Positions 56,801 to 58,506 of a DNA stretch of 63,882 nucleotides are shown here, piece after piece; the first letter of the stretch is position 1; each line of letters starts with the position of its first letter. Below the pieces are notes generated by a model, which saw only the letters and a program-made list of their open reading frames with translations, made no database searches and was not told where the DNA came from. The stretch lies in the NCBI GenBank assembly GCA_977016875.1, contig CDRNST010000104.1, positions 2,356,001 through 2,419,882 of the forward strand, written 5' to 3'. Origin of the DNA: Pavona decussata (taxonomy: Eukaryota). Made by a program: the position numbers and the translations under genes.

Positions 56801-58506
56801 TGAATGCAGTTTTGTTGTAAACGATCTTTCTTTACAGATGGTACCAAGGAAGCAGCTTTTACCACGGCAATGTTGTCAGCCGCACTTGCATATAACATAG
56901 CAAACGCCTGTACAGCAAAAGATGTAACAGAATGTAACTGCGAAGGAATGAAACGACCTGTGCGTGGACATTCCTGGCAATGGAAAGGCTGCAGTGTTAA
57001 CGTTCGCTTTGGCTGCCACACGGCTGAACGATTTATGCTGAGTGGGAGAAGTAACAACAGCCAAATCAATATTATGACCAGGCACAATGTTAGAGTTGGA
57101 CTGGAGGTAAGTAGCGGAGTTTTCGGTGTACATTTCCATTGTTTTATTTAATCATTTGAACAATTTGACAAGATGAACAATTGAAATATAACAAGAAACT
57201 GCTTACGACTTGTGATACAAATCCTGAAACCATTTTCATACAGTTGTTTAAAACTATATAAACTAATAAAAAAATTAGTTTACTTAGAGATGGTATACAC
57301 TTGACAGTAAAAAATAACTGACAAACGTAAGTCCTCGCTAAATTAACTTTAAAATACATTACAATTCAAATAAAGATACTCATAGATTTAAACTCACTTT
57401 TCAAACTTTGGGTTAAAATTTCAAATCATTCAATTGCTGTCGTTTTATGTCTTTGCTGCTTTTAAGCGGTTTGTGAAGAGAAATATGTATTTTTTGCCAC
57501 CTCATCGGTTTTCCGACTGGTGTCACTGAACTTAAAGGGGTAGTATCATGGGGTTTATGGTATCTTTCGTTAAAAATGATGAAATAAGACCTTTAATCAG
57601 CTGCCAAATAATTCTAGAATGACGAGAGGACAAAAATCAACTCAATTCTTCAAAGGAACAACTCGTGATCTGTTCTAGCGCATTTTGGAAACAAAAATGC
57701 GAGAACTTGAAAAACATTAGCCTAACATTTTTCAAGTTTCAATCCATACCGACCTACTCTGTCTCTGGCCAAGAGACACTAATCGACAGTTTCATTGCAC
57801 TGGGGGATAATTTATAACAAACTTGACAATTATTTGTTTTGTTTCTACCTGACAGACAAACATTTTTGGGTTTTGAAATGACAGCAAATTTGCGTGATAC
57901 TTCCCCTTTAACTAACAAAGAAATTAAACTTGTTAATTAATGCATTGGGAATGTATACTCTTGTATGTGTAACAACATGGTAAAGCAATGCAGTAGGCCT
58001 AAAGGCGTTTCTTGTCTTTTTATCAGGTATTGAAGGAAAATAGAGTGATCAAGTGCACAGTGGGAAAAACAGGAAAGGTAAAGGGGTGCCAGCTGACTTT
58101 ACCACCGCTGCAAAAAATCAGCCGAATCATTAAATCAAAATATAACAGAGCTATCAAGGTCGTCGCTACAAAACGCGAAAAAAAGCGGTCGTTTTACCTA
58201 CGGACCAGTGGGCGGAATCGAAATCGATCAAATTTTAAACGACCAAAGAAGTCGGAATTAGTGTTTTTGTCCCAGTCCCCGACGTACTGCTACCGGCAAG
58301 ACGAATACCGCATTCCAGGAACACGTGGTCGCAAGTGCCAGAGAAACACCCACAAAGAAGATGATTGCTTTTTTATGTGTTGTGGTCGCGGATACAACAG
58401 AGATGTATCTTTTAAGAAGAGATTCTGTGACTGCAGCAAGGGTCTTAATGAGCGATGCAGCTGCAGAGAATGTACTGATGTTATTATTGAGAACACGTGT
58501 CTGTAA
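50856..58506 (+). CDS. WNT7-like: Divergent Wnt-family ligand (Wnt7-like), 341 aa; exons 50856-50908, 51839-52062, 56838-57106, 58027-58506
   Basis: Signal peptide MIKLNFTALILFVILSLS, then CEKTPGLSDGQRKLC, ECEREFKWNRWNC, GTKEAAF, ACT..ECNC, WQWKGCS, MTRHN, ELVFLSQSPTYC, GTRGRKC, MCCGRGYN and terminal TC. Intron phases 2/1/0; 1026 nt in frame. Residues CxKxPGL, WNCxxLGE, EAAFT, LxEN, TLP and KYNxA resemble Wnt7 from memory. Exon 1 and the exon 2 acceptor (NAGNAG 51839/51842) are less certain. Confidence 0.9.
52199..53028. mobile_element. Tc1/mariner-type (pogo-like) MITE in Wnt intron 2
   Basis: ta-cagtcaaacctgtatataacgg ... ccgttatatacaggtttgactg-ta; several internal ctgtatataacggtcac repeats. 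Confidence 0.88.
55540..56100 (-). mobile_element. Possible degenerate Penelope-like GIY-YIG endonuclease relic, with a ~120-bp tandem duplication (55855-55974 / 55976-56095)
   Basis: Minus strand reads EKPKRVVYKIPCNCGG, then in a shifted frame FQTRKKKH, similar to VVYxIPCxCGxxYIGET...TRxKEH. The duplication is directly visible. Confidence 0.45.
57536..57907. mobile_element. TTAA-flanked MITE in Wnt intron 3
   Basis: ttaa-aggggtagtatcatg ... cgtgatacttcccct-ttaa. Confidence 0.65.

Follow-up and report, generated by a model that had tools for sequence, protein, structure and literature searches.

A stony-coral clade of Wnt-fold proteins with a rebuilt index-finger tip at Frizzled site 2

A Wnt gene in the window, i.e., the whole stretch of 63,882 nucleotides of Pavona decussata DNA analyzed here, encodes a protein in which both regions known to contact Frizzled are altered. 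With a probability of roughly two in three, we regard its product as a secreted Wnt-fold protein that lacks the canonical two-point grasp on the Frizzled CRD and whose finger scaffold offers a new loop to another partner. Under this reading, 48 bases of the last exon would specify the index-finger hairpin tip of an intact secreted Wnt-fold protein from a stony-coral clade, which would have changed very fast at its origin and stayed nearly constant since. The site-2 tip would have been rebuilt during the burst, not lost. The beta-hairpin and the flanking cysteines 1, 3, and 13 would have been retained, the Phe, the Trp, and the vicinal Cys-Cys turn would have given way to a polar loop of 7-8 residues, [KS]-x-x-x-[ND]-[EK]-P, and the Val position would have become an invariant Cys.

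The gene and its fingertip

The tip reads CDCSKGLNERCSCREC and is encoded in frame within the final exon of the Wnt gene (Table 1). The reference pattern C-x-C-K-F-H-W-C-C-x-V-x-C-x-x-C can be fitted to it without a gap. The human Wnt3 counterpart of the 16 residues is CHCIFHWCCYVSCQEC in a gapless HMMER alignment, and Wnt3a and Wnt7a likewise align over the tip without gaps. The 16-residue register and the unchanged length proposed in the initial annotation of this DNA are thereby borne out. The substitutions are F5 to K, W7 to L, C8C9 to NE, and V11 to C; the site-2 set (F317, W319, C320-C321, and V323 in XWnt8) is absent and is represented in the window by K, L, N-E, and C. By alignment to Wnt3, the new Cys11 occupies the position of Val323 in XWnt8 and Val337 in Wnt3a. 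By the Pfam wnt profile, the same genome has at least 27 Wnt last exons; the other 24 intact ones that were read all have the pattern C-x-C-x-[FY]-x-W-C-C.

The thumb of the same protein reads CTVGKTGKVKGC where CKCHGxSGSC, with the acylated Ser of site 1, is expected, and this replacement is conserved in the family. The initial annotation had both Frizzled sites altered, and the thumb sequence CTVGKTGKVKGCQLTL agrees with it.

The gene is intact, with four exons, 341 codons, and a signal peptide, and the orthologue P0013 has the same length. The Pfam profile PF00110 hits three exons of the window above cut-off (profile positions 2-55, 55-159, and 162-304), the last exon by itself scoring 99.4 bits (E = 3.6e-28). 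The short exon 1 was missed by tblastn with orthologues and was found via the 5' UTR of a transcript contig, L048; its placement and length agree with the N-termini of the orthologues P0013 and P0015. The acceptor of exon 2 was picked by analogy with the L048 cDNA junction, and an in-frame alternative lies 18 bases upstream. Searches and folds used single exons of the window or database orthologues. Two transcript contigs of orthologues, L047 (SRR26074475) and L048 (JGI 3300008006), align to the window as exon-sized blocks with GT-AG borders. Full-length spliced contigs of orthologues (1.2-2 kb) are found in RNA-derived assemblies, which indicates that the family is transcribed.

Table 1. Features of the Wnt gene and its surroundings in the window
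Feature	Position	Strand	Remarks
5' untranslated part, exon 1 (approximate)	50584..50778	+	L048 bases 1-192 match at 77%
Exon 1, coding: ATG and hydrophobic signal-peptide start MIKLNFTALILFVILSL, donor AG|GTGAGT	50856..50908	+	read from the sequence
Exon 2: N-terminal part of the Wnt domain (PF00110 positions 2-55) with 4 Cys	51839..52062	+	
Exon 3, covering Wnt domain positions 55-159 with 5 Cys; splice sites cag|AT (acceptor) and GAG|gtaagt (donor)	56838..57106	+	
Extra Cys codon (RFGCH), lineage-specific	57014..57016	+	in window and P0015/P0055
Exon 4 (last), with the thumb, a basic linker, the C-terminal finger domain, and the stop codon	58027..58506	+	
Rebuilt thumb CTVGKTGKVKGCQLTL replacing CKCHGxSGSCxxKTCW, lipidated Ser absent	58054..58101	+	
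Rebuilt index-finger tip, Frizzled site 2: CDCSKGLNERCSCREC	58426..58473	+	
New Cys, tip position 11	58456..58458	+	invariant in 93 family sequences
Two overlapping open frames matching reverse transcriptase (RVT_1)	61831..63763	+	about 3 kb downstream of the Wnt gene; look like a frameshifted retroelement

The C-terminal half of the protein is strongly basic (+26 net charge over 159 residues), at the top of the range among the Wnt paralogues of this genome and not beyond it. This charge is weakly compatible with binding to glycosaminoglycans or proteoglycans. From the sequence, another receptor, or a role as an antagonist that binds LRP5/6 or proteoglycans, would be a reasonable proposal.

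Conservation and place among Wnts

The same 48 tip bases are found in an independent assembly (L031, ENA ERZ25073751), with 97% identity over 2 kb flanks, and the proteins P0026 and P0027 carry the window's tip peptide. A word search with the last exon gave 11 orthologous last-exon fragments (62-93% identity), and full-length orthologues of 338-342 residues were retrieved with the spliced fragment P0009. Named orthologues come from Montipora capricornis and M. foliosa (database name "Wnt-7a-like"), Orbicella faveolata ("Wnt-7b-like"), Pocillopora meandrina, Porites harrisoni ("Wnt7p"), and Desmophyllum pertusum (a partial protein, the N-terminal part without the tip region). Both the complex and the robust clades of Scleractinia are represented. 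Rhodopsin-type GPCR genes (7tm_1) lie a few kb from the Wnt gene at four of four orthologous loci in other coral assemblies (L031-L034).

The 93 family sequences comprise 23 tip variants: 21 have 16 residues and two have one additional loop residue. The cysteines at tip positions 1, 3, 11, and 13 are invariant, so that the new Cys first noticed in the window is family-wide. Aromatic residues, F and W included, are absent from positions 5 and 7 in all 93 family sequences, as is CC from positions 8-9. The claim that the F/W tip and the CC had been replaced by polar residues thus proved stronger than first stated. Of the 21 variants, 19 have Pro at position 10, 19 have Lys at position 14, and 20 have Asn or Asp at position 8; positions 5-7 vary (K/A/T, G/S/A, and L/V/P/A, respectively). 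The window's Arg at position 10 (ERC vs. EPC) is shared with P0026, P0027, and L031, and is a young lineage change.

Pairwise dN/dS in the last exon is 0.08-0.18 at dS of 0.8-1.7, which indicates purifying selection on the family. Substitutions are commoner within the 16 tip codons, with 7-12 nonsynonymous differences between genera, and the cysteine frame is intact. The tip thus belongs to a shared stony-coral framework under purifying selection. The private sequencing or assembly error that the initial annotation had named as its own counter-explanation is contradicted by the identical bases in L031 and by the family conservation.

A decaying duplicate or an artefact of sequencing or assembly could account for the low Pfam score of the window's last exon, the lowest among intact last exons of the genome (96.9 bits vs. 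140-216), and a decayed Wnt8-like copy (L050) does exist elsewhere in the genome. Against such decay stand four open exons with canonical splice sites, the low dN/dS, a tip conserved in both major coral clades, spliced orthologue transcripts, and the identical tip in an independent assembly, and we give this explanation scarcely any credence. Both the pseudogene and the assembly-error readings were ruled out by the L031 identity together with the dN/dS of 0.08-0.18. None of the contigs had the look of human DNA.

To place the family, a profile of 12 full-length members was searched against 1.84 billion representative proteins. Family members score 651 bits; the best outsider, from a hemichordate, reaches 251 bits and an Actinia Wnt-7a-like protein 187 bits. 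The nearest outsiders of this search have canonical tips. The family forms one clade with 100% support in both the last-exon tree and the full-length protein tree. The stem of the clade measures 2.2-2.3 changes per site, compared to 0.05-0.3 inside it, and the long stem with short inner branches indicates a burst of change followed by stasis. Its position among Wnts has 32% support in the maximum-likelihood last-exon tree, and in the maximum-likelihood full-length tree it joins an unresolved polytomy that includes Wnt7-like rows. Long-branch effects are likely, given such a stem. The data are compatible with a Wnt7 origin.

No anemone orthologue was found, although the library searched includes anemone proteomes, and every named family member is a stony coral. 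Judged from protein databases, in which corallimorpharian data may be missing, the clade appears so far to be known only from Scleractinia.

Canonical Wnt7 (XP_031572228 of Actinia tenebrosa and human Wnt7a, PDB 8TZO) shares the Pfam family and the fold with the coral clade, and NCBI names the orthologues Wnt-7a/7b-like. Wnt7a is the coral protein's best sequence match in the PDB, by a negligible margin (64.9 bits vs. 64.2 for Wnt3). However, identity between the coral clade and canonical Wnt7 is only 26-33%, the Wnt7 thumb CKCHGPSGSC and tip CxCKF.WCC are both replaced in the coral family, and the coral family has 21 cysteines compared to 24 in Wnt7.

As for Wnt8, neither LC.xC.L in place of CCGRG nor a grouping with Wnt8 was found in the family, which retains MCCGRGY and is not part of the clade (100% support) that unites the Wnt8-like genes of this genome. 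Drosophila WntD lacks the acylated serine and is nevertheless secreted, functional, and maintained as a signal, which makes it a precedent for Wnts without lipid. WntD (PDB 4KRR, N-terminal domain) is a Wnt8-type gene, whereas the coral clade does not group with the Wnt8-like genes of its genome. Three Wnt8-like paralogues in the same genome (L025, L030, and L049) have also lost CKCHGxSGSC, but they retain the canonical tip (CNCKF[IE]WCC, CECKFVWCC), and both sites are rebuilt only in the window's family. These paralogues belong to a large Wnt8-like expansion, in which at least 13 last exons carry LC[NK][SA]C.L where CCGRG is expected, on contigs C93, C274, C436, and C145 (loci L015-L022, L025, L030, L049, and L050), within which L050 is a decayed copy with the tip deleted and a stop codon.

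The WCC turn is absent, as in the coral family, from a Wnt-9a-like protein of Priapulus caudatus (P0242, XP_014681019) and from a Wnt of the sponge Halisarca dujardinii (P0182, A0A175C7A9). The replacements in these tips differ from those of the coral, and both are single entries of unverified quality, unrelated to the coral clade. These two proteins hint that site 2 may have been lost more than once.

In literature searches on coral Wnt7, on cnidarian Wnt subfamilies and orphan Wnts, and on non-lipidated Wnts, we found no description of the family or of its altered receptor sites. The proteins themselves are public under automatic Wnt-7a/7b-like names; the present analysis adds the rebuilt tip, the invariant Cys11, and the odd number of cysteines.

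Frizzled contact, predicted fold, and cysteine pairing

Site 2 in the complex of XWnt8 with the Fz8 CRD comprises Cys315, Phe317, Trp319, the tandem Cys320-Cys321 disulfide, and Val323 (review, PMC10695916). In mouse Wnt3a, W333A almost abolishes binding to the Fz8 CRD, reporter activity is abolished by F331A/W333A, C335A, and V337R/D/Y/W, and the thumb mutation S209A abolishes both binding and activity (PMC4068752). In zebrafish embryos, Wnt3a site-2 single mutants are still active (PMC4068752), thus site 2 is not always indispensable. In the coral family, every site-2 position that carries experimental weight is replaced, and so is the thumb motif. Replacement of all these positions argues for loss of the canonical Frizzled site-2 contact, which we consider well supported. 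A small aliphatic residue, mostly L/V/P/A, at loop position 7 could keep a weak contact. With the site-2 residues replaced and the lipid-bearing thumb rebuilt, the canonical two-site grasp on the Frizzled CRD is most likely absent.

The predicted fold is that of a Wnt. AlphaFold2 modeled the orthologue P0013 from 60 aligned sequences with pLDDT 87.4 and pTM 0.82, and Foldseek aligned this model to Wnt3 (6AHY) with TM 0.79/0.86. Against Wnt3, Wnt7a, and XWnt8, TM ranges from 0.66 to 0.86, with the two-domain Wnt fold and the thumb and finger hairpins all predicted. The conserved core, as initially claimed, is therefore upheld by the predicted fold (pLDDT 87; TM 0.79-0.86 to Wnt3). The finger of the P0013 model consists of strands 305-319 and 327-340 joined by a seven-residue loop (320-326). 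The window's own last exon (pLDDT 86.8) gave strands 123-137 and 145-158 and a loop at 138-144, with pLDDT 91 in the tip blocks. The predicted strands and loop suggest that the finger hairpin is retained, and its end is a wider polar loop, in models that are influenced by the canonical Wnts in the alignment; the Trp-Cys-Cys apex of canonical Wnts is expected to form a much tighter turn. This conserved, proline-stiffened, and disulfide-framed loop would most likely be a new epitope for a receptor, a co-receptor, or a matrix component.

The same models bear on whether the protein is still a Frizzled ligand, either because the rebuilt loop, with its aliphatic apex and Cys, touches a co-evolved coral Frizzled or CRD-only protein, or because other surfaces of the Wnt bind. 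The hairpin and the disulfide frame are retained in the AlphaFold2 models, loop position 7 is mostly L/V/P/A, and Wnt3a site-2 single mutants are active in vivo (PMC4068752). Possible co-evolving partners also exist in the genome, in which the Frizzled-type CRD is matched at least 73 times, tandem arrays included. Yet W333A nearly abolishes and S209A abolishes CRD binding by Wnt3a (PMC4068752), and both sites are replaced here; moreover, the genome's Fz5/8-type CRD is, by eye, very near the vertebrate one, so that a sign of co-evolution is absent there. We therefore consider continued Frizzled binding unlikely, and the reading of a new loop for another partner is retained.

Many of the CRD profile matches lie in tandem arrays of short frames (e.g., C436:6333324-6401563 and C229:278863-281966). 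The genome further contains four long intronless Frizzled-type frames (L035, L038, L039, and L043), of which L035 looks like an Fz5/8 orthologue. A complex prediction of the C-terminal domain (window positions 58255-58503) with the Fz5/8-type CRD (L035:1489-1851), in a single run without controls, gave a score of 0.00 and carries no weight either way.

The number of cysteines, counted from the first conserved Cys, differs among lineages. P0013 and the proteins of Porites, Orbicella, and Pocillopora have 21. Montipora has 20, as Arg takes the place of Cys16 in each of the 14 Montipora-type sequences. In the window and in P0015 the number is 22 via the extra exon 3 Cys, at a position that is Ser or Thr in other orthologues. 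The family has lost two thumb cysteines as well as the CC pair, and it has gained Cys11. The counts are thus 21, 20, or 22, and not an even set of 22-24 conserved cysteines, all disulfide-bonded.

An unpaired Cys implies either that the finger ladder is rewired (C1-C13, C3-C11, with Cys16 free) or that a free thiol sits beside the tip. We take the canonical finger ladder to be C1-C16 and C3-C13 (4F0A annotation). A first pairing, in which this ladder is kept and Cys11 would be free at the loop edge, fits the strand limits of the AlphaFold2 models, which lean on canonical Wnts. A second, re-registered pairing, C1-C13 plus C3-C11 with Cys16 as an orphan, would have both pairs symmetric about position 7, and it fits the Montipora sequences, where the count is even once Cys16 is lost. 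The strand limits and the Montipora change of Cys16 to Arg therefore give opposite indications on the pairing.

Alternatively, the unpaired Cys could itself be the purpose of the change, forming an intermolecular disulfide, either for homodimers linked covalently in the manner of Norrin and other cystine-knot factors or for covalent capture of a partner. Such a role would suit the 21 mature cysteines in four lineages, the invariance of Cys11 across the family, and the models, in which Cys11 is the last residue of the exposed loop and C3 and C13 are cross-strand. It is at odds with the even counts in Montipora (Cys16 to Arg) and in the window lineage (extra Cys in the N-terminal domain), a pattern that is better explained by an internal C1-C13/C3-C11 ladder with Cys16 as a dispensable orphan. 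A covalent purpose is thus judged very unlikely, and a new epitope on a rebuilt finger tip remains our preferred reading.

Implications for coral Wnt signaling

Knowledge of Wnt reception rests almost wholly on the contacts that the lipid-bearing thumb and the hydrophobic finger tip make with the Frizzled CRD. Both contacts are replaced in the coral clade, yet on either side of the complex/robust split of reef-building corals the protein has remained strongly constrained. The clade would thus be a natural experiment on what the Wnt fold can do without the Frizzled CRD.

The Wnt-7a/7b-like labels would mislead expression studies into reading an ordinary Wnt7. In laser-capture RNA-seq of Pocillopora acuta, a gene annotated as "Wnt-7a" showed some of the strongest up-regulation in the aboral (calcifying) tissue (PMC13581030), and it may be a member of the coral family, since the family is automatically named Wnt-7a-like.

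A more speculative extension, which we hold to be quite unlikely, is a Frizzled-independent Wnt-fold signal whose finger, through its unpaired Cys, forms disulfide dimers or covalent complexes with a coral-specific partner. If true, it would represent a new signaling or matrix-organizing route that arose with the scleractinian lineage and is possibly linked to the calcifying aboral tissue. The body patterning and skeleton building of corals depend on Wnt pathways, and the family is a candidate lineage-specific signal in them.
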